DNA of 64,000 bases from Camelus dromedarius (lineage: Eukaryota): positions 44,082,001 through 44,146,000 of the forward strand of contig NC_087444.1 of NCBI RefSeq assembly GCF_036321535.1. The letters run 5' to 3'. The notes under the pieces are model-generated. The model made no database searches. It was not told the origin of the DNA and saw only the letters and a program-made list of their open reading frames with translations. A program made the position numbers and the translations under genes. The stretch's first letter is position 1. Each line of letters begins with the position of its first letter. Shown in pieces: positions 1 to 47,900 of the stretch.

Positions 1-613
1 TCCTCAAGGAACTCCTGCTGGGACGTGAGGACAGACCAGTGGAGGGCAAGCCTGGGGAGGCTAAGGCACAGCCAGAAACCAGCCCCCACCCCATTTAAAA
101 GGCCCCTCTGTGCCAGTCCTGCCCTGCCCCCACCTGCCATCTGCCTGGTCCCTGGGGTCCTGGTCCCCCCAGCTGCTGGGTTTGCTCACGTGATGCCCCA
201 TCTGCTGTGAGTCAGAAGGCAGATTGAGGGCCAGTCTTGGTTGGCGTTAGGGTTGCTGAGCCTCCTCTGGTTCTTGGTAGGGCGGCGGCACTGAGAATTG
301 GGGCTGTGTTGTCACATTACCCCCATCCTCTCACCATCCCTGACCCAACTCTTCACTGCATCCCTGACATGGGTGTGGCCCCTACCACTCATGACTCACA
401 GGCAGCTCTTACTGAAGATGAAGTGACCTGAGGTCCAGCTCAGCTGGAGCATAGTCCATGTGGCCCACTTGAGGCCACATGGAGGGCTGTCCCTGCCCTC
501 CCCCTCCCATCTCTGTCATGCTGGGCCCTGCTAGGAAGGCCACCCCACAACGCACAGACCTGGCCACAGCTCTGCCTTCTCTTTTACCGTCTTTCTCCTG
601 GGCTGAGTGGCCA
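1..613 (-). promoter_or_regulatory. Duplicated promoter-like module, copy 1 (AP-1 207-213, E-box 187-192, GC box, TATA-like about 93-100); probable ADGRG1 alternative promoter
   Basis: Direct repeat of 20559..21201; the motif order fits minus-strand transcription. Confidence 0.6.
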
Positions 614-3260
614 ACCCTTCCACCTCTGTCTTCACAGCCATGAAGCTGCCCTCCAAGCAGGAGCCTAGAGCCCCTGAGCCCAGGCCTAGGGCAGCCAGGC
701 CAGCCCTGCCTCACAACCCTGCCCTCCCCATCCAGCTGCAGTGGCAGCCTGGGCACCCAGACCCCAACCCCAACCCCACCCCAACCCTCTGGCTGCAGTA
801 CTACCCAAGACTTCCCATCACCCCTTCCCCTGAGAGCAGATTGGGACCTGCTGGCCTGGCATTCAGGCCACAAAAATGACCCTTGCCAGATCTCCAGTGC
901 CATCACTGCCCCACCCCCCCACCCCTGTTCTCATCATTCCCAAAACTTTTCCCACGTAGTGTCCTCTGCCAGGAATGCTACCTTCCCCCACCCCAATCTC
1001 CATACACGCAAGCCAAACCCGCCTCCCCTCACCACCAGCCTCCATGGCCAGCCTCTATGCCCTCTGCAGAGCCTCTGGGTCCTCCCAGTGGGAGAGTTCT
1101 CTCCTCCTCTTCTAGCAAGCTTATCTCACTCCCCAGCCTCAGATCCTAACTGTCTTGTTTGTTTGTGTCCCTGACCAGATGAGGATGTCCCAGCCATGCT
1201 GACTGGGCCCTGCCCAGTGGCCCAGGGAACAGAAGTGGCAACAACAGTGCAGGCTGCCTAGCATAGCCTCCCCATCCCAGACCACACCTGGAGTGGTGTC
1301 CTTCATGACCTAACACTCTCAGAGCCGAGCCCCAGGACCACGGGAGGCAGGACAGCTATGATCACCCCCATATGCCCACTTAGTACGTGGGCCCAGAGGG
1401 AGAGGCAAGGCAAGGTGGCCATGATGATGCTATGACTGAGGTCCCTGGGGCCCCTGCAGCAAAGGGGGGTCAGGTCTGGCCCCAAGAGCTAGTCCCATCC
1501 CTGGACATGGGCAGTGAAGACCCCATGGGACCTCTGGCAGCCAGCAGTTCTCACTGACTGGAGACGCTTCTTCCTGCTCAGTCTCCAACCCCAAGGAGTC
1601 AGTCCTGAGGAAATCAGCGGCAGTGGGCAGGGCCTTGGTTCTGGGTCTGGACCACCCATGAGTTCTAAAACACCTTATTTGTCTCATTCGCTGCCATGTC
1701 CACCATCCCTAGAACAGTACCAGGCACACCATAGGTGCTGGATAATTATTTATAAGAATAACGTATTTGGCCCTCTATAGCCACAGAGGCTATTCCTCCC
1801 CACGCTACCTAGCTGAGGGCAGAGCAGTTCCAGGCAGGGTGGGAGTGGGGTAGGTAGAGGGGGGCCCTGCCTCAGTTCATGCTCCCCAACCCTCTCAGTC
1901 AAAAAAAAAAACACCAGCCTCCTCCCATGGGGCCATGGGAGACCCCAACTCAGTCCCACAGGAAGGAGGCTGGTTGGGGAGGCAGGGAGGACAAGAACCA
2001 GCAGTTGCCCCAGGTGGGAACTGGCGGTGGGGAGGCCCTATCTGTGCAAGGCAGATGGGGGCCCGGGGTCTGGCAGTTGGCAAGCAGCGAGTCCTCAGCC
2101 TCTGCTTCCCCATCTACTGCCACTGGTTCCCAGGGTGTTCTCTCTAATCCCAGGTCCTCCATGCTCAGACCCTACTTCCAGGACCATCTCCTCCCAAAGG
2201 TGGCCTGGGTGATGAAGAGCCAGACTGTCCCCAGCTCACTGGGAGCCCTGAACGCAGCCCCCAGGTAGCTGCAGGTGAGGGCTGCAAGAGCCCTGTGCCT
2301 AGTCCCCTGCGGCGCCCTCTCCTCCCTGGGGCCAGATCCTGGCTTTCTATCCCCAGACTTGTTCTGTGACCTTGGGGATAAGCCCCCTTCCTCTCACAAC
2401 TTTGGTTCTCCTATCTGTACATGGGAGCAGGAGAGGATGGTTATCTCACTACCCAGAGAGCAGACCCCAGTTTGCTGGGCCCAGTGACTCTATGACTCTG
2501 AGCCTCAGTTTCCCTGGCTAGTGGCTCTGACAAGTTTCATCCTCTGGGGCCCCATCCCCTTCCCAGGCATCTCCCTGTCCATCCACCCCCAACTCTAGAG
2601 ACCCCGCACAGCACTGCTCATGTGGGCTAGCTCCGAACCAGTTACCAAGACTTCAGTTCTCCGGTCTACCACCGCCCCACCCTCTGCCGCACACACCCCC
2701 ATCCCTCCTCCCTCCTGCTCTCATGCCCTCCATCTGGTACCTGGTGACAGTTAGAAGGTCCCGCATGGGGCCAGGCAGCTGAATTGCCTTTCAAGATCCA
2801 CCGCCGAGGCTTAACCTGCCAGCTGTGGTCCCACTGCTGAGGGAGCGCCTGTGGTGTGGAGGCTCCCAGCCCCTCTCCTGCAGCAGGGCAAGGCAGGCAG
2901 CCAGTGTGGAGCCGGGGGAGGTGCCTGAGTGTGTTTTGGTGGGGGGGACACCCCCCTCTGCCCCAGCTGGGCTCCTCCCTCCTCCTAGCTCTGCTGGGGA
3001 TGACGGGACCATACGTGAGTCACGGATTTCTCAGAGGGAGGCTGGGAGGGGGCAGGGCTGAGAGAGCTGAGGCAGGGATACTGGGGGGGATGCCCATGAC
3101 TCAGCGCTGGGCAAGGGGGCACTTCAGCCTCACCCCACATCCAGGCAGACAGGTGCCAAGCTTCATGGATGGATCCTGGTTGGAGATATCTCTGCCTCCT
3201 CGCCTTCCATCTGGCGCTTCCCTAGAGCTGTTCTCCCCAAAGTTCCCGAGAGAGGCCAGG

Positions 3261-9200: not shown

Positions 9201-9611
9201 ACAGGCTCTAGGCACCGGGAGAGGAAGCCAGCAGAGACACTGGCTGCAGGCCTCCTGCCTCCCCATCTAAACACCCAGGTTTGCAGGCTCCCCTTGACCC
9301 CCAGCCCTCCAGTCTCTTCATCTGAGCACAGGGAACACACCTCACACCCTGCTGGCTTCCCTGTGCCAAGATGGCCACCACATAAGCACAGCCAGCCCAC
9401 ACTCAGAGTGGCCGGGGGTAAACCCAGGATAGCCAGAGCCTCCTGATTTGGATCAGCCCAAAACCCTGAGCAGGCCAAGGGCCAGGCCTCATACATGCCT
9501 TCAGGCAAGGAACTAGACCTGGGGGTCGGCCAAGGTCAAGTGGGCCAGGCTGGGAGCCACACTCTCCCACCTTTCCCACCCCGTCCCCCACCCCGAACAG
9601 CAGATTCTTAC

Positions 9612-9746
9612 CTCAGGTCTGGGCAGGCCCCTGGCTGGACTCTGCCTAGGCTGCCTCCTCCCCTTTCACCTCCTCCAGGGATCACAGGCACCCAGCCTGA
9701 GCTTGTCTGGGCAGGAGGCCCCAGGTGTGGCTCCGCCTGCCTGTCC
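9612..9746 (-). other. ADGRG1: ADGRG1/GPR56 alternative non-coding first exon
   Basis: Minus strand CAGGCGGAGCCACACCTGGGGCC...CCCAGACAAGCTCAGGCTGGGTGCCTGTG...GGAGGAGGTGAAAGGGGAGGAG...CCTGCCCAGACCTGAG closely matches my recollection of the human GPR56 mRNA 5' end. Donor GAG|GTAAGA; ETS site CCGGAAAT at 9760..9753. Confidence 0.75.
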
Positions 9747-10934
9747 TGCCCCATTTCCGGCTGGCCCCATGGCTGTGCTGCCGCCTCCCTCTCTCATTCC
9801 TGAGTTTCCCTGCAGGGGCTGACCTGATCCCTTGGGTGCTGAGTGTCCCCCCCACCTCACCTCAGCCCTTAATGGGCTTTCAGCACCTCTACACAGGGAC
9901 AGTGGGCGGCTGGCCCACCCATGGACCCTGGATGAGCTGGGGGAGTCGCTGAATGTCTCTGAGCCTCAGCGCCCCCCTCCCCAGGGCTGTTGGGAGTTGC
10001 TGCCCCGAACCCCATGCATAATTACCAATTCTGCGAGTGAGCGCTGCCTCCTCTCTGAGCTCATGCCCCACCTAAAGCCTGGGTCCAGATTCACCTGCTT
10101 GTAATAAAAACAAGCCAAGAGCCAGCAGCTGGCTGGAGGCAAAAGGCGAAGTCGGGGTGCAGGGGAATGGGGCGAACATGGTCCCCACTCTCAGAACATC
10201 CAGCCTCCTGTAAGACATAAAAGGGGAGCTGACACAGACAAAGGGTTGGGGCAGGGATAGGAGCTTCCTCCTAGGAAGGGATTAGGGGCCGCTGCCCCAG
10301 GTATCCTGGGGGTACAGAGGAGAGTGGTCCAGTCAGGCTCTGCTTCACCTGCGAGGCCCCCACGGAGGCTCGGGGCACAAACATCCCAGCCTCCTCCTGG
10401 ACCACTCTCCCCCAACCCTGCCTTCATGGCCCCTGGGCCACACTTCAGACCTCACCTGAAACCAGCCGTTCTCAGGGGGAGCCTTTCAGAGTTCTCACAC
10501 TAGGCATCCACTCCCTCAGGTGGCTCTGGTTCCCACTCCCACCCCCAATATCCACAATATTGAGAACTGGGCTACCACCTCCTCCAAGAAGCCATCCAGA
10601 CAGTTGTTGATTCATTTGACAAAGTCTGTGTGAGGAGCCGCTGTGGGCCAGCCCCAAGCGAGGCACTGAGTGTACAGACATGTGCCTTGGGAGCCTTCCC
10701 TCATTTCCTCATTGGACTGTGTCTCCCATGGCCCTCTGGGGTCCCCCTCACCTGGGGCCCATCTCCCAGTGTCAGAATCATTTCTTTCCTTGTCTGTGTG
10801 TCCTGCCAGATCACCAAACACAAGTCCCAGCAGAGGGACTGGTGTAGGAAAATTCTGGGTGACCAGTGGGTGAAGGAGAAAAAGTAGGGATGAGAAATAG
10901 ATGATGGATGGATGGAAGGCTAGACAGGTGGACA

Positions 10935-17500: not shown

Positions 17501-20500
17501 GCTCTTGCCTCCCCTCAGCCCTGTCCCAAACCCCAGCTGACCTATAGGCTCAGATGACGGACAGGTCTGGAAAGTGGGTTTAAGTCCTGAACATCTTCTC
17601 TGAGGAACCTGAGAACCTGGGCTTCTGACCAGGGAGGGGCTCCTGAGGAAAGGATGCTCCCATGACAAGCTGGGTTCACAGGGCTGCCTAACCCTAACTT
17701 CCAAGAGCTGGGAACAGTCCAAATGCCCAGCACCAGGAAATCGCTCAGAAAGCACAGCCCAGCTCTGCACCCCTGCGGTGACCAATCATCTCTATTTGCC
17801 CAGGACTGTCTGTTTTAGTTCTGGGTCCCAGGAAATGCCTCAGTCCCTGACAAACTGGACAGTTGGCCATCCCCACTCATTCATATGGTAATGACAAAAA
17901 AAATGCTTATAAATACTAAATTCAGTGAAAATAAGAAGAAAACAAAGGTGGCATCTTCACCCGTCCCAGGGACCTGTTTCTCTGCTCTGAGACAGGGCTG
18001 GTACCGAGGGACCACTCAGAAACTGCAGAGTCAGTGGTGGCAAATTTGTGTCTCTGGGTCCAGCTTACGAGTAAGTGTGGGACACTGGAGCCGGTTCAAT
18101 TTCAGCTCTACCACACACTTGCTGTGTGACCTTGGGGAGGTGACCCAGCAGCTCTGTGCCTCAGTGTCCCCATCTGTAACCTGTTCCTACCCTCTTGGGT
18201 GGTTGTGTAGCTTCAGTGAGATCAATCACAGAAAGCACCGTGCTGGGCGTGCTGCAAGCACTTGAGCGATGCTGTTAGGAAGCAAAGTCAGTTGGAAGGA
18301 TTGTGGGTGTTCTTTTCCATTTTAGAATTATTTCCATTATGGCTGCTCTAAAGTTGTTTGCACAATACAATCAAAGCAAAACAAAAAGCATACATATCTG
18401 CGGACATGGATGTATATAAATAGAGCCTGAAACCAAATGTTACACTGGTTGTGGGGTGGGGAGTGAGGGGCTGCTCCCCGGATGCGGTGGCTGGCCCCAA
18501 AGCTTGCCATTAGAACAGCTGACAGGAGATGCAGCTGAGGCCTCGCTGAGGTTACCCCAAACCATGTCAGAGCTAAAACCTGAGCAGGCAGCTCCAGTTG
18601 AGGAAAGAGGAGGCAGGCAGTCTCCTGAGTCAGAGAGGGTGTCTTTTGTTTCCGGGGAAGCCCAGCACAGGCACGACTCAGCCCCACCCCCACAGCTGAC
18701 ACAGATTCCATTCCCCTCAGCCCTCACCTTGTCTTGCAGACAGCAACTTGGGACTGCCATGTCCCCACAGGTAGGAAGGTCTGCTCCTGTACACAGAAGG
18801 GGCAGCCACGCTCTCCCAATCTGCTTTTTCATTTGTCTCTGAACTCCTAACCTAGTATGAAGTATGTCTTGTGCAGGGTGGGCAGAGGGAGCAGTACCTA
18901 GGGTACAAAAAGGTGCCAATAACCCTGCACCTCACTCTAACCCGCCTGGGACTCTGATGCAGACTCTGTTATTATCTCATCTCAAAGTCAAAACAAAACA
19001 AACCACAAGGCTCAGAGAGCAGAATGTTACTTGCCCTGGAAAGTAGCAAAGCCAAGATGTGTAGCCAGACCTACCAGGCTGCCGTGCCCACTGGCTTAAC
19101 GACTGAGCCATCCTCTCCCTGGGCACATGACACCTGGCTGAAGCCCAGGTGACTGGCATGGCAGGCAGCATGCTGAAGCTGAGTTTGTAGGCTGGAGCTG
19201 GGCTCTCAACTCTGTCCAGGCTCACCAGGTGACCTTGGTCAAGTCCCTTCCTGTCTCTGTGCTTCAGTCTCATTGTCTGGGGAAGCTGATGGCTGAACTG
19301 GAGCAGGAGTTACAAACCACAGCGCCCCCCCACCCCCCGCCCAGGGCCAAACAGGGCAAGCTCATGAGAACAGGAGGGAAGTCAGGGGTGGGGGGAAGAC
19401 CATAGGTAGTGGAGAAGCCTGGGTTGAACTAGAGAGTACGGGCCATCTTGGGGAGTGCTGCCCAGCACCAGCCAAATGTCACTTGAAGGGATTTGGGCCC
19501 AGTGTGGCCTGATCCTTCAGTTTTTTGAGAAGAGTCAGAAATCTGATTTTTATATGACAATCTAAATTGTTAACAGTTAAGATTTAATTCAAATAGATTT
19601 AAAGCCCTTTGAGAGTCAAAGCCTATATAGAGCCAGACACTGCCCATTGGTCTCCAGCTGACAACCCCCGGACTCCATGTCAGACCCTTTGGTGTTCCCC
19701 AATATCCACTGGCCCCCTTCTAATGGAATAGAACCTCATGTTTTTAGCTGGGTTCATAGCTTCCCAGAATAAAGACATCATTTCCCAGTTTCCCTTGCAG
19801 CTAAGTGTGGCTACACAAGTGCATCTATCTGCCCAATAGGGAGATCACAGAAGCTAACATCTATATGGGTCATGTGCTGTTGTAAACACATTACTATGGC
19901 AACACCTTAAGGCTCACAGTAGCCCCACAGCAGATACTATCTTATCCACTTTTTCTAGATGAGGAAAATGAGGCAGATGCTCAAGTTCACACAACCAGAG
20001 AGGAACAAGGCCAGGATTCTCCCCCAGGCAATCAGCCTTCCTATCTCGGAGGGTCCTGTCCCTCCAAAGGAGTGTGGGCTTGGCAGTAGAAGGAATAGAG
20101 TTCCAGACAAGGCCACATGTCCTCTGGTCCCCAGCACAGAATCTGGCCTGGCCAAGAGGCCCCCTCCCCAGTGAGGGGGCAGGAGAGCACCGTGGATAAG
20201 AGCCCAGACTCTGGAGCCCCCACGATAAGCAGTCACTCCTGTGTAAGCCTCCAGTGCCTCAGTGTCCTCTGTCTCTAAAGTGGGCACATCAGGAGCTCAT
20301 GCCTCGCAGGCATAAAGGTGCATGTAAAGCACTAAGCCCGGGGCCTGGCAGAGGCTGAGGGCTGGAAGGTTCAGGACTGTTCTAGCCCAGCTGACCCACC
20401 AGGAAACCAGGGAGAGTTTGAGTCTTGAGGGGCCTGTAGGGATGTCTCAGCCCACTTGTGTCCAGGCAGGCACCCGCAAGGGCTCAGAAAGCGTGTGTCC

Positions 20501-20558
20501 TAAGCTCCTCCCCAGAGCAGCCCTGGCCTGACCCTGAATCTGCAGGGCTCCCAGGGGG

Positions 20559-21201
20559 CCTCAAGGAACCCCTGCTGGGACGTGAGGACCAGACTGGCAG
20601 AGGACAAGCTTGGAGAGGCTGAGGCCCAGCCAGGATCACCCCCACCCCATTTAAAAGGCCCCTCTGTGCCAGTCCTGCCCTGCCCCCACCTGCCATCTGC
20701 CTGGTCTCTGGGGTCTTGGTCCCCTCAGCTGCTGGGTTTGCTCACATGATGCCCCATCTGCTGTGAGTCAGAACGAGGGGTTCACTGGGCTGCCTGGAGG
20801 ATGGGATAGGGGGTGCTAAGCCCTGCAATTCAGGAAGAGGAGGAGGCATTGAGGTTTGGGACTGTGGGCCTACATTTCCCCCATCCCCCTACCTGCACCC
20901 CCAACATCCCCACTGCCTCCTCCATGCCATCCCTCAGGGCCCTGCCACATAGAGAAGCCACCTTTATCCCTGAGAGGGGCGCAGCCTCTACCACCCACCC
21001 CCACACTGCTCTTGCTGAGGATGAAGTAACCCGGGGTCCAGCTCAGCTGGAACACAGTCCATGTGACCCCCTTGGTGGCTGTCCCTGCCCTTCCCCCACC
21101 ATCTTTGTCAGGTTCTGCAAGGAAAACCACCCCACAACACACAGACCTGACCACAGCTCTGCCGCCTCTTTCACCTGCCTTTTCCCTGGGCTGGGCGGCC
21201 A
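20559..21201 (-). promoter_or_regulatory. Duplicated promoter-like module, copy 2; probable distal ADGRG1 promoter
   Basis: 83-217 aligns to 20639-20773 with 4 mismatches and no indels; 406-613 aligns to 21008-21201 at lower identity. Confidence 0.6.
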
Positions 21202-22920
21202 CCTCCCGCTCTGCCCCAGCCCTGCATTTCCTTGTTTTCCCCACTCAGACTGCTTCTCTCCAGGCTGAAGAGGCCTCCACGTCTGGACTCCTGGGTACTC
21301 ATCCCATGGCAGCTGTGTGACCTCTAGCAAATCACTGCCCTCTCTGGGCACCTCTGCATCCAGACCCAAGGCCTCCCGCCGCAGTTTCTGAGTTAACTGG
21401 TTTTGGATGGTACCCAGCATTAGTAATTTTTTTTACGCCTCTCCCACCAAGTGACTCAACTCTAGTGTCAGGGAAGGGGGAGGGTGGTGTTTTCTTCCCG
21501 AGGGTCAGGTGTCAGGCTCCCATTTCTCCACCTGCCTCAGTCACTGGCTCAGCCTCTCCCCTGGAGGTGTAGGGTACCTGGAGGCAATGATCCGGAAGGA
21601 AGAGGCCCCAGAGGGTCAAAGTCTGGGCCCGTCAGCAGTAGACAATGAAACCCTGGCTGGCCAAACACTCAGAGGCTGCACCTGCTGCTCCACAAACACG
21701 CCTCTGAGCAGCAGGAGCCGCAGGGTCAGCCTCCAGCAGGCACTCAGCCAGGCCCACCCCACCCCAGCCCTGTTGAGCTTCTGCCAGAGTGAGAGGGGCC
21801 GCTACAGGCCAAGAATGCAGCACAGTCACCCATGGGGTGGGCCACAAGACATCACAGAAACAGCCCAGCCCTGGAGACATGCAGACCAGGGGTCCTGTCC
21901 CCCTTCCATCACTGACTTGCAGTGACCTTGGGCAAGTCCCTTTCGACTGAGCTGCAGTGGGCCTTTTCTTAGCAACAATACGGTAAATAAAGTGCCCAGC
22001 CCAGGGTCCAGCCTAGAGTTAGAGCAGCAAACAGCACCACAACAGGAAGAGAAAAAAAAAAAAAGATAAGCTGTTTCTTCTTTCCAGTGCTTGCTGAAGT
22101 CAATAAATAATGTGAAGGTTAATAAATCAAGAAATAGCAGTAAAAGCATGTTATTTATTGCCATAGAGGTAACCACACATGAATTAAAACTGTTAAGTGG
22201 TTGGCTCTGAGGAAGGGGTTTTCAGGAAACTGGGCCTTTTGATAAGTAAGTCCTTTATTACCAGTTCATGTTTTTTAATATCTATTTCTTAAAAGTATTT
22301 ATTAAAAAGTGACTCAGCCTCTCCAATGTTGTTTTGAGAGGTCACCACTCTTAACAGAAGTATTTGGGGCTGATAAGGCCAAAATCAGTTCAAGTGCTCA
22401 AGATGTAGAGTCAGGCTGCTGGGGTTCAAATCCGTGCTCTGCAACTTGACTAGCGTGCCACCTTGGGCAAGTTACTTAACCATTCTGTGCCTCAATTTCC
22501 TCATCTACATTCCATGCTGCTGGCATATATAACTGTGAGACATTATTATTATGGATCTATAACTCATATATGCAATTGGTTTAAAAAAATAAGATCATTA
22601 TGCTATACATAGTTTTTTGTAACTTGCTTTCTTTTTTCTTGCCAAGATATAATGGATATCATTCCAGATCAGTACGTAGAGTCCTATTTCATTCTTTCTA
22701 ATTGAGGCAAGAATTCCATTGCACAGAATGTAGAACTGATTTATCCATAACTTCCTACTGAAGGAAATTTAGGCAGTTTCCAATTTTTAGTACAATATGC
22801 TTTGCAGCAATGAACATATATTTTGGGGCACATGTGTGGCTATTTCTGAAGAATAGATTCCTAAGAGAGGAACTGCTGAGTCAGAGTTTGTGCAGTTAAA
22901 ACTTCTATAAACTTTTATAG

Positions 22921-44900: not shown

Positions 44901-47900
44901 GCAGCAGCAGAGTCTGTCCCCAGACTCCCCCAGGCCCCCTACCCCCACACACTCTGAGCCCAGTCCCTGGGGTGTCCCAGCCTCTACAACACTCTCTTCG
45001 CTGATTAGGAGTGTCTGAGGGCTGGCAGTGCCATGCCAGCACAGATTGGGGGAACCAGTGCCGGAGCCTGAGCAGGCGAAGCAAGGTGGTCGGTGGGGAA
45101 GAGCCAGGGGCAGGCTGAGCTCCACTGAGGGCCTGAGAGTCCAGGGCCAGGGATGGGGGGTGGTGCTGGCCTGCAGCTGTGCGTTGCCAGGAGGCCTGGC
45201 CTAGGAGGCCGTGTGTGGGCACTGGAGTCCTAGAGTTAGCCAGTGGCAGAATAGAACATGAGCCTGGCCCGCGAGAGGCCTTGGGGTTCCAGCACAAGGC
45301 TGTGGCCAAGCCCCCTGGAAACTGCCCCCTGTCTAAGAAGTGGCCCCCTCCCTGCCCCACAGCCAGTGCCCTGCCTGCAGGCCACCGTCTGGAGCCCCAG
45401 GGCCCAGTGGCCCTGCTGTCAGAGCCAGGGAGCTGCCGCAGCCCTAAGCACACTCACATGGACATGTTCTGGAAGCCCGTGCTGTTTCCCTGGCTGTTGG
45501 AGAGAGGGATCACGTAGGGTCCGTAAACTGAGCTCTTGACAGCAACAAGGAGCAGCACCAGGGAAGCTGGGACCCCTGAGGAGTGGGACAGAGGCTCAGA
45601 ATCTGTCAGAAGTCCCCAGAGGTGAGCTGGCTGTGAGTTCCTGGGGCTCCTAAAACAGAATTCCACTGGGCAAGTGAAGTGGCCGGAGGGAAAGAGACTG
45701 TTTCCAGCCGCTGTCACGTGATCCAGCCTCAGTGCAATCAGCCTGGTGGTCTTAGAGAAGGCTGTCTCCAAAGTGATATGAGTGAGGGCCCTAAGGTGGG
45801 ATGGTAGCAGCTGTAGTGATGGTCACAATGTGAGGTGGTGGCTCGGAGGTAATGGGAGAGAGGGTTTGGGAACTGGTGAGGAAGCAGCTAATAAAGTGAG
45901 GGGCTAGGATGGCAATAGAGATGGCAACGATGGTGGTACCAGAGACAGTGGTGAAGGTAAGGATGAGGATGGCAGTGGTGATGGAAGTGGAGGTGATGGT
46001 GGAGGTGATGGTGGTACTGGAGGTGGTGATGATAGAAGTATTGAAGGTGGAAGTGGTAATGAGAATAGCAGTGTAGGAAGCGGTGGTGGGTGTTGGCAGG
46101 GGTAACGGGTGGTCTTGGCAGCAGTCACCGTGATGAGGAGGAAGAGAAAAGGAAGGATGGAAGGGGCAGACATATGGTCTGGCTGGAAGCCTCAGGAAGC
46201 AAGAGCGGAGGGAGACTCTGCTTACCCCAGCCCACGGCACAGAGCTTGAGCACGTATCGGCGGATGTAGACGTTGTAGACACGCCCAAGTAGGAGGTAGA
46301 GGTTGAAGCCTTCAATGGCCATCCAGGTGAGGCAGCTGAGCAGTGAGTAGTGCAGGATGGCAGCCAGGGCCGTGCATGCTGACCCGGGCACGGGGGGCAT
46401 GGCCAGCACTGGGCTCAGCAGGAAGGCGACATTGAGGAACAGCACAGAGGCGTGCAGGTTCATGTGGATGCGTGTTATGGAGTCACTCTGCCTCCTGTGG
46501 GTGGGAGCATGGCCCTCTGTGACCTGGACATCACCAGGCAGTTCCACTCCCTGGGCTCATAGACACACAAAGACCAGGACACAGGTCGAGAGGGGCAGGG
46601 ACCCAAGAGCAGCCACACAGGGAGGCTGATCTCCTGTCTCCCAGGATCTGCCCTCTGGAGAAGCCCACCAGACTCTGGGGGACTGAGCAGGAAAGAAGGA
46701 GGAGGGCTGAGCATCAGTGGGTGGGCAGGCCCAGCAGGAGAGCAGGGGAATACCTGGCATAGAAGTGCAGCAGGACAGTGAGCAGTGAGGCCACGATGGA
46801 GATGCTGCAGCCCACCAGGGAGATGTACGTGAGAGGCGCCAACAACTCTGCAGGGACTGGGGCCGGAGAGAGTTGCTGTGGGAGGGAAGGAGGGCCAGAA
46901 GCATGGAAATACCCTCCCCAGGCTGAATTGGAGAGATCTACCAAGACCTTACCTCTAAGACCCCACCCTACAATCCTAGCTGTAGTCCTGGCTTGAAAAC
47001 AGCCATAGCAGACATAGTGGCCTTTCCACCTCCCAAGTCCCATCTCCCCTCCACTCCCTCATGCTCTAGGCACATGGGTGGACCCTCCACTTCTCCCACT
47101 ACGTGCAGTCAGGTGTACCAGGCCTGGACTATCAGGCCTATCCCTCCTCCTGCCCCCAGTGACTGATTAAGGGATGGGCATGTGATGCACCCTAGGCCTG
47201 TGAGACTCAGTCCCAAGACTTTGGCTGGCAGAATTGGGAAGACAGCTCTCGGTCTACTGGCCTGACAGCTTGCAGGACATGAGCCTGGGACTACTAGCAG
47301 CCATATTATTATCCCATGGGGAGATCTAAGCTAGCACAAAGCAAGCACAATTGACAGACAGAGATAGAATGAGATAGATCCTATCCTGGTGCTACTGAGC
47401 CCCTGGATCAAGCCGTGCCTGAGGACTTAACTCCAGCCTTTTCAGGAACATGAACCCATAAATTTCTTTTTTTTTTTTTTCTTAAGCCCATCTGAGTTGG
47501 ATTTTCTGTCTGTTGAATCAGCTTTTGCCTTTCTCCTCTGTCCTGGACATGGGGCTCTCTGCAGTTCTGACCACCCTCACCCAGGCTGGATGCGTACATA
47601 CCATGAGAACAGCAAAGTAGGTGAGGTGGGTGCAGCGGCAGAGCACCTGGGAAGGTGAGGGCTGCTCTGTGCGACAGCCCTCAGGGCTCCAGACCCCCCA
47701 GTGCTGTTTGCTGGCTCCCTCCTTCCAGAAGACACAAGTCACCATGTAGCCTTCCTAAGGGGAGATGCTGGAGTTGGGTGTATCCGAGGGGTGCAGGGGA
47801 GGGCTGTGGATCAGGGTCTGGAAATTGTGGGGGCCAAAGGTGACTCATCTGTACCCTGGTCAACATTTTACCAGGCACTGGCTGGGCTTTGACATCAGAC

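Follow-up and report, generated by a model that had tools for sequence, protein, structure and literature searches.

The DNA analysed here, referred to as the window, is a stretch of 64,000 nucleotides from the dromedary (Camelus dromedarius, contig NC_087444.1) that lies upstream of the coding exons of ADGRG1 (GPR56). Coordinates are window positions, and negative values denote bases left of window position 1. ADGRG1 is a brain and immune receptor gene and the textbook example of a gene that owes its regional brain expression to an evolving array of alternative non-coding first exons. We found three 7tm_2 exon matches on the contig, all on the minus strand, and named them by their best match among solved structures (each with E ~1e-43 to 1e-45). 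The exon at 46224-46475 belongs to ADGRG5 (best PDB match 7eq1, E=2e-43); therefore, the 3' part of this gene occupies the right part of the window. The 7TM exon of ADGRG1 lies ~24 kb and the 7tm_2 exon of ADGRG3 ~52.7 kb to the left of the window. The signal-peptide exon of ADGRG1, which carries the ATG and matches an NCBI Camelus dromedarius protein, was located on the minus strand ~15.7 kb left of the window. Between the coding exons of ADGRG5 and ADGRG1 lie two copies of a non-coding module, hereafter A and B, read on the ADGRG1 sense (minus) strand and placed ~16 kb (A) and ~36 kb (B) upstream of the ADGRG1 ATG. Along the minus strand, the order is ADGRG5 - B - A - ADGRG1 - ADGRG3.

First exons used by ADGRG1 in other mammals were placed on the same map. 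The 5' UTRs of 45 ADGRG1 cDNA contigs, taken from RNA assemblies that represent pig, guinea pig, and three additional protein clusters, were mapped on the dromedary sequence. The first exons project to -12.0 to -12.7 kb, -7.5 to -7.9 kb, -7.1 to -7.26 kb, 2724-2924, and 9595-10146. The exon at 2724-2924 (minus strand) is a real, widely used non-coding first exon of ADGRG1 that is spliced straight to the ATG exon. It is represented by cDNA contigs of pig (5) and guinea pig (9), by three others, and by a golden-mole gene model, its donor is kept in the dromedary (CACCAG/GTACCA at about 2741/2740), and TGAGTCA and TGACTCA sites are found 100-350 bp upstream of it. The exon at 9595-10146 (minus strand) comes from cDNAs L036 and L037 of the P0096 species, in which it is the first exon. 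In the dromedary it falls in a stretch at 8-10 kb with a high G+C content (GC 0.615), probably a CpG-island promoter of ADGRG1. A further cluster of first exons lies ~7.1-8.6 kb left of the window, with donors ~7264 and 7902 bp left of position 1 in pig and P0039 cDNAs. The exon for the N-terminal extension of a cattle ADGRG1 isoform maps ~8.5 kb left of the window; it occupies 8474-8578 bp left of position 1, and the 52-aa extension it encodes is found in cattle and deer isoforms.

A BLAST search of positions 1-3000 within the window returned one non-self match, namely 2-613 against 20559-21201 (72.9% identity over 667 columns, E=2e-107). When 60 kb of sequence to the left was added, the full extent of the alignment was found to run from 725 bp left of the window to position 613, against 19828-21201 (81.7% over 1406 columns). 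The weakly matching middle is homologous as well (230-613 against 20799-21200, nhmmer E=1.6e-42), and no homology was detected past either end of the block. Copy A accordingly lies in part outside the window (725 bp to its left, L001:776-1500); its portion inside, 1-613, is made up of a diverged upstream half and a conserved core, followed by the beginning of the central region. Copy B is complete at 19828-21201, is collinear with A, and loses homology at both edges. Both read on the minus strand. The block is ~1.35 kb long and non-coding, and its copies lie in direct orientation 20.5 kb apart, with an offset of 20,557 bp at position 1. A preliminary description of this DNA had reported two separate pairs of similar segments, 1-217 with 20559-20773 and 406-613 with 21008-21201, in direct orientation and 20,556 bp apart. 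These pairs are indeed alike and turn out to be the better-aligned parts of one continuous alignment in direct orientation. The distance essentially agrees with the offset given above; the extent of 1-613 is real but partial, as examination of the left extension revealed.

Whole-genome searches placed each half of the block at exactly two sites in the 2.3-Gb dromedary genome, and no third, diverged copy was found within the 124 kb formed by the window and the 60 kb to its left. The interval between the copies (19 kb), compared in chunks by nhmmer, contains nothing collinear and only dispersed SINE-type matches. Because this interval DNA has no collinear counterpart, a remnant of a large 20-kb tandem duplication is ruled out. 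The 31-mers of each copy were present at 0.93-0.97 in several independent DNA runs, and an assembly artefact is therefore excluded. The block is thus a discrete 1.35-kb duplication with two copies. The local duplication in the ADGRG1 5' region that the preliminary description had proposed is borne out by the two genome-wide matches and by their position on the sense strand upstream of the coding exons.

The same description had set this duplication against exaptation of a transposable element. The block itself is not a transposable element, but its downstream half holds two SINE fossils. An iterated profile run over the 124 kb revealed a dispersed family of ~200 bp that is very dense here, with 88 profile matches on both strands, and which we take to be a MIR-type SINE on account of its resemblance to the MIR core. 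Fossil 1 occupies 20246-20352 in B and 205-309 bp left of the window in A (profile E=1.2e-11 and 6e-10, respectively), while fossil 2 occupies 19865-20041 in B and 514-679 bp left of the window in A (E=1.3e-25 and 1.9e-25). The two fossils have opposite orientations and sit in equivalent places in A and B; they predate the duplication. The promoter-like half of the block gave no match to the profile of this family.

The identity between the copies is a mosaic. Followed in gene orientation along copy A, the first segment (613 to 216) is 73% identical to B and rich in indels (K2P 0.34). It is followed by the motif core (215 to 80) with 96.3% identity (K2P 0.039) and by a segment (79 to 11) that, with 83% (K2P 0.21), has the lowest similarity within the central region. 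Identity then rises to 97.8% (K2P 0.022) from 10 to -450, drops to 70% (K2P 0.43) from -451 to -493, recovers to 92.5% (K2P 0.08) from -494 to -615, and ends at 71% (K2P 0.37) from -616 to -725. A background K2P of 0.34-0.43 is thus interrupted by three tracts totalling ~715 aligned bp in which K2P is 0.016-0.08 (0.016-0.039 in the core and the main tract, 0.08 in the third). On the minus strand of copy B, the main tract, apparently homogenised, corresponds to 20105-20567, whereas the second, which would be older or only partially homogenised, corresponds to 19941-20061. The longest perfect run between the copies, 192 bp, falls in the main tract; when the mismatches were shuffled 20,000 times, the longest run averaged 38 bp and reached 107 bp at most, so that 0 of 20,000 shuffles attained 192 bp. 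An RNA gene as the cause of the identical tract was ruled out by an Rfam scan of both copies, which returned only two sub-threshold MIAT matches (E ~0.5).

Near-identity of this kind may reflect either constraint or homogenisation, and the cattle locus served to tell the two apart. The cattle locus with its 10-kb flank begins opposite window position 223, and from that point its collinearity with the dromedary extends through the gene. On the basis of this synteny, the cattle segment L011:1-950 is the ortholog of copy A. Camel and cattle differ by K 0.24-0.31 over most of the block. In the long tract (10 to -450), A and B differ at 10 of 461 sites, compared to 107/452 between A and cattle and 100/454 between B and cattle, and its camel-cattle K of ~0.28 is the same as that of the neighbouring DNA. 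Since the tract has diverged from cattle to this degree and contains a SINE fossil, selection cannot explain the identity of A and B. We infer that the copies were recently homogenised here, by non-allelic gene conversion or by an equivalent partial re-copying. The camel and cattle lineages split ~64 My ago; scaled to this date, with K ~0.28, the K of 0.022 in the long tract would correspond to ~5 My, which suggests that the last homogenisation of the largest tract dates back only a few million years.

The diverged flanks bear on the age of the duplication itself. In the unconverted flanks, K between A and B (0.35-0.43) is similar to K between A and cattle (0.32-0.45), and by this measure the duplication would date to around the camel-ruminant split or before it. 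Over all 911 sites, the distance to cattle is practically the same for both copies (195 differences for A, 196 for B), an equality that a camelid-specific duplication whose flanks diverged fast would explain as well. Polarised with cattle, 8 of the 9 derived changes in the main converted tract fall on copy A (binomial p about 0.04), while all four derived changes in the core (4/4) fall on copy B. Such one-sided distributions are not predicted by a single clean conversion event.

The core stands apart from the rest of the block. It comprises ~135 bp in copy A (80-215) and corresponds to 20639-20771 in copy B, both on the minus strand; in copy A it contains TGACTCA, CAGCTG, CAGATG, a G-rich box, and the TATA-like motif TTTTAAAT. 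Copy A and cattle differ at 12 of 132 core sites (9%) versus 185 of 785 sites in the rest (24%; Fisher p=8e-5), which indicates that the core is under constraint, as far as 132 sites and one species pair can tell. The corresponding count for copy B is 16/132 (p=0.003). Change between camel and cattle is thus about three times slower in the core than in its surroundings, and one 50-bp segment within it is 98% identical between camel A and cattle. In cattle, TGACTCA, CAGCTG, CAGATG, and the G-rich box are preserved with little or no change. These patterns make the core most likely a constrained cis-regulatory element of ADGRG1, and the counts suggest that it has been better kept in copy A than in copy B.

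What kind of element this might be is the point at which our results depart from the preliminary description, in which both copies were putative promoters with candidate exon starts. Spelled out, both copies would be working alternative promoters of ADGRG1 whose cassette was duplicated as a unit, each equipped with a TATA-like box and with a first exon, non-coding and ~170-220 nt long, that starts near 65 (A) or 20623 (B) and is spliced to the ATG exon. The candidate donors are located 101 or 157 bp left of the window in A and at 20456 or 20400 in B, and the acceptor of the ATG exon ~15.63 kb left of the window. Its location speaks for this reading, as the copies lie on the sense strand upstream of the ATG of a gene known for many alternative first exons, and so does the constraint on the motif cluster between camel and cattle. 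We nevertheless regard it as rather unlikely. The minus-strand motifs on which it drew are in large part present: TGACTCA (AP-1) and TTTTAAAT occur in both copies, the E-box CACGTG holds for A but reads CATGTG in B, and the supposed GC box is a G-rich GGTGGGGGCAGGGCAGG and not a canonical GGGCGG. We rejected the TATA, E-box, and AP-1 matches as promoter evidence, however, since such short matches are weak and their identity between A and B follows from the conversion tract.

Comparison with the cattle ortholog of copy A also argues against the promoter reading. There, TTTTAAAT is replaced by CTCTCAAGT, CACGTG reads CACATG, and the best donor shared by A and B, CTG/GTGGGT, is lost (CTG/GGGGCT). 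The only donor kept is a weak one, CAA/GTGGGC in camel and CAG/GTGGGC in cattle, the conservation of which counts in favour of a first exon. The candidate exon start had been described as conserved between the copies. High identity is indeed found further downstream, but the ~70 nt that follow TTTTAAAT (79-11 in A) have only the 83% noted above, so that the presumed start is where the copies are least alike. Just downstream of the TATA-like motif, the ~50 bp at 33-82 contain 11 differences between A and B, eight of which are derived in A when polarised with cattle, a local burst of change in copy A at the presumed start site. The CpG observed/expected ratio is <=0.25 in both copies, and neither is a CpG island.

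Transcript data point in the same direction in part. None of the 45 ADGRG1 cDNA contigs, which represent about five non-camelid mammals, aligned to the module beyond noise (0/45), and none starts there. When cDNA fragments with the N-terminal exon were searched for camelid sequences, the best matches had 78-90% identity and none was camelid, and a search for orthologous contigs by means of a chance ORF in the module gave no match. On the other side, at least four dromedary transcript accessions at NCBI share the same protein, and sequence of both copies occurs in RNA-seq contigs, which indicate no start or strand. Around A, such contigs account for as much as 83% of 1.5 kb and extend upstream of the presumed start, as would be expected of intronic RNA; for transcripts with a start at 2.9 kb or 10 kb, copy A is part of intron 1, which explains this coverage. 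B-specific 31-mers (window 19758-21258) were found in RNA-seq contigs of at least five runs from two studies. In RNA runs of these two studies, the 31-mers of copy B were present at 0.43-0.57. Only 17% of the 31-mers of B are common to A, and therefore B-specific RNA or contaminating DNA must be present. Copy B is farther upstream than any ADGRG1 first exon identified in other mammals; its signal may stem from a start site that is more distal still, from ADGRG5 read-through, or from contaminating DNA. Overall, the evidence leans against the module as a promoter, without settling the matter, and for the core an intronic or upstream enhancer appears more likely than a core promoter.

A stronger version, in which A and B are both active as paralogous ADGRG1 promoters, or as a promoter and a shadow enhancer, and in which ongoing gene conversion keeps their regulatory core and adjoining DNA alike, strikes us as unlikely. 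It is doubtful, too, that the duplicated segment is functionless, with a neutral history of duplication and conversion and with a core preserved by chance or by a mutational cold spot. The neutral camel-cattle divergence of most of the block, the SINE fossils inside it, and a start site without transcript support would all agree with such a history; the threefold deficit of differences in the core relative to its flanks, significant for A as well as for B, and its 98% identical segment would not. Membership of the module in a dispersed transposon family, to which the two SINE pieces in the downstream half might point, and an artefactual second copy are both highly improbable, as the two-place genome-wide matches already refute a dispersed repeat as the identity of the whole block, the promoter-like half and the unique inter-SINE sequence have no other match in the 124 kb, the SINE pieces recur in the same places together with unique flanks, and both copies are present in independent DNA runs.

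We therefore favour, with a probability of roughly 0.7, an old local duplication of a cis-regulatory module whose copies have been kept partly alike by gene conversion. According to this reading, a 1.35-kb non-coding segment of the ADGRG1 5' region would have been copied once, in the same orientation, to a site 20.5 kb further upstream. The segment would already have held its cluster of transcription factor motifs and both MIR-type SINE fossils before copying. Non-allelic gene conversion would afterwards have overwritten ~715 aligned bp in patches, and the conserved core may have served as a homology anchor for these events. If the module is regulatory, local duplication and concerted evolution can be added to the ways in which the ADGRG1 array changes. 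If both copies were promoters, the non-coding promoter cassettes of a single gene would be evolving in concert, and part of the GPR56 array would have grown by local duplication rather than by transposon exaptation. The analysis also has a methodological side, in that an outgroup tells gene conversion from constraint in paralogous non-coding DNA, and it carries a caution, namely that near-identity of paralogous 'promoters' is not evidence of function.

Interlocus gene conversion is well known between mammalian segmental duplicates, for example the gamma-globin genes and their flanks. The dromedary module resembles these systems in its patchy, near-identical tracts of a few hundred bp within older, diverged duplicates that lie in direct orientation on the same chromosome. 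It differs from the typical case in that the copies are short (1.35 kb) and their background very diverged; an identity of ~70% is near the low end thought to sustain conversion. Tandem duplication and gene conversion have also shaped clusters of variable first exons, as described for the clustered protocadherins, which were contrasted with UGT1 and GCNT2 (PMC1885805). Common to those clusters and to A and B are paralogous 5' units of one gene in direct orientation and the homogenisation of nearby copies. The protocadherin-type first exons are, however, coding, numerous, and arranged in tandem, each with its own known promoter, whereas A and B are just two in number, non-coding, and 20.5 kb apart with unduplicated DNA in between, and their use as promoters is putative.

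The closest comparison is with the GPR56 array itself. The published accounts consulted describe a long 5' region with many non-coding first exons on one coding body, 17 in human versus 5 in mouse, and credit new non-coding exons and a regulatory element to the exaptation of Alu and LINE sequences (PMC9148063, PMC8525043, bioRxiv 10.1101/2020.10.21.348821, citing Bae et al. 2014). Gene and region are the same as here, and first exons of other mammals project onto the stretch analysed. In contrast, local duplication does not figure in those accounts, and the A/B module is only a putative first exon. Our literature search found no paper on a duplicated module at the ADGRG1 locus. The new points are thus the outgroup-based evidence for gene conversion, the constrained 135-bp core, the two SINE fossils within the cassette, and the map of first exons around it. 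Compared with these systems, the A/B module is a small, non-coding example, of putative function, of a known and ordinary kind of event.
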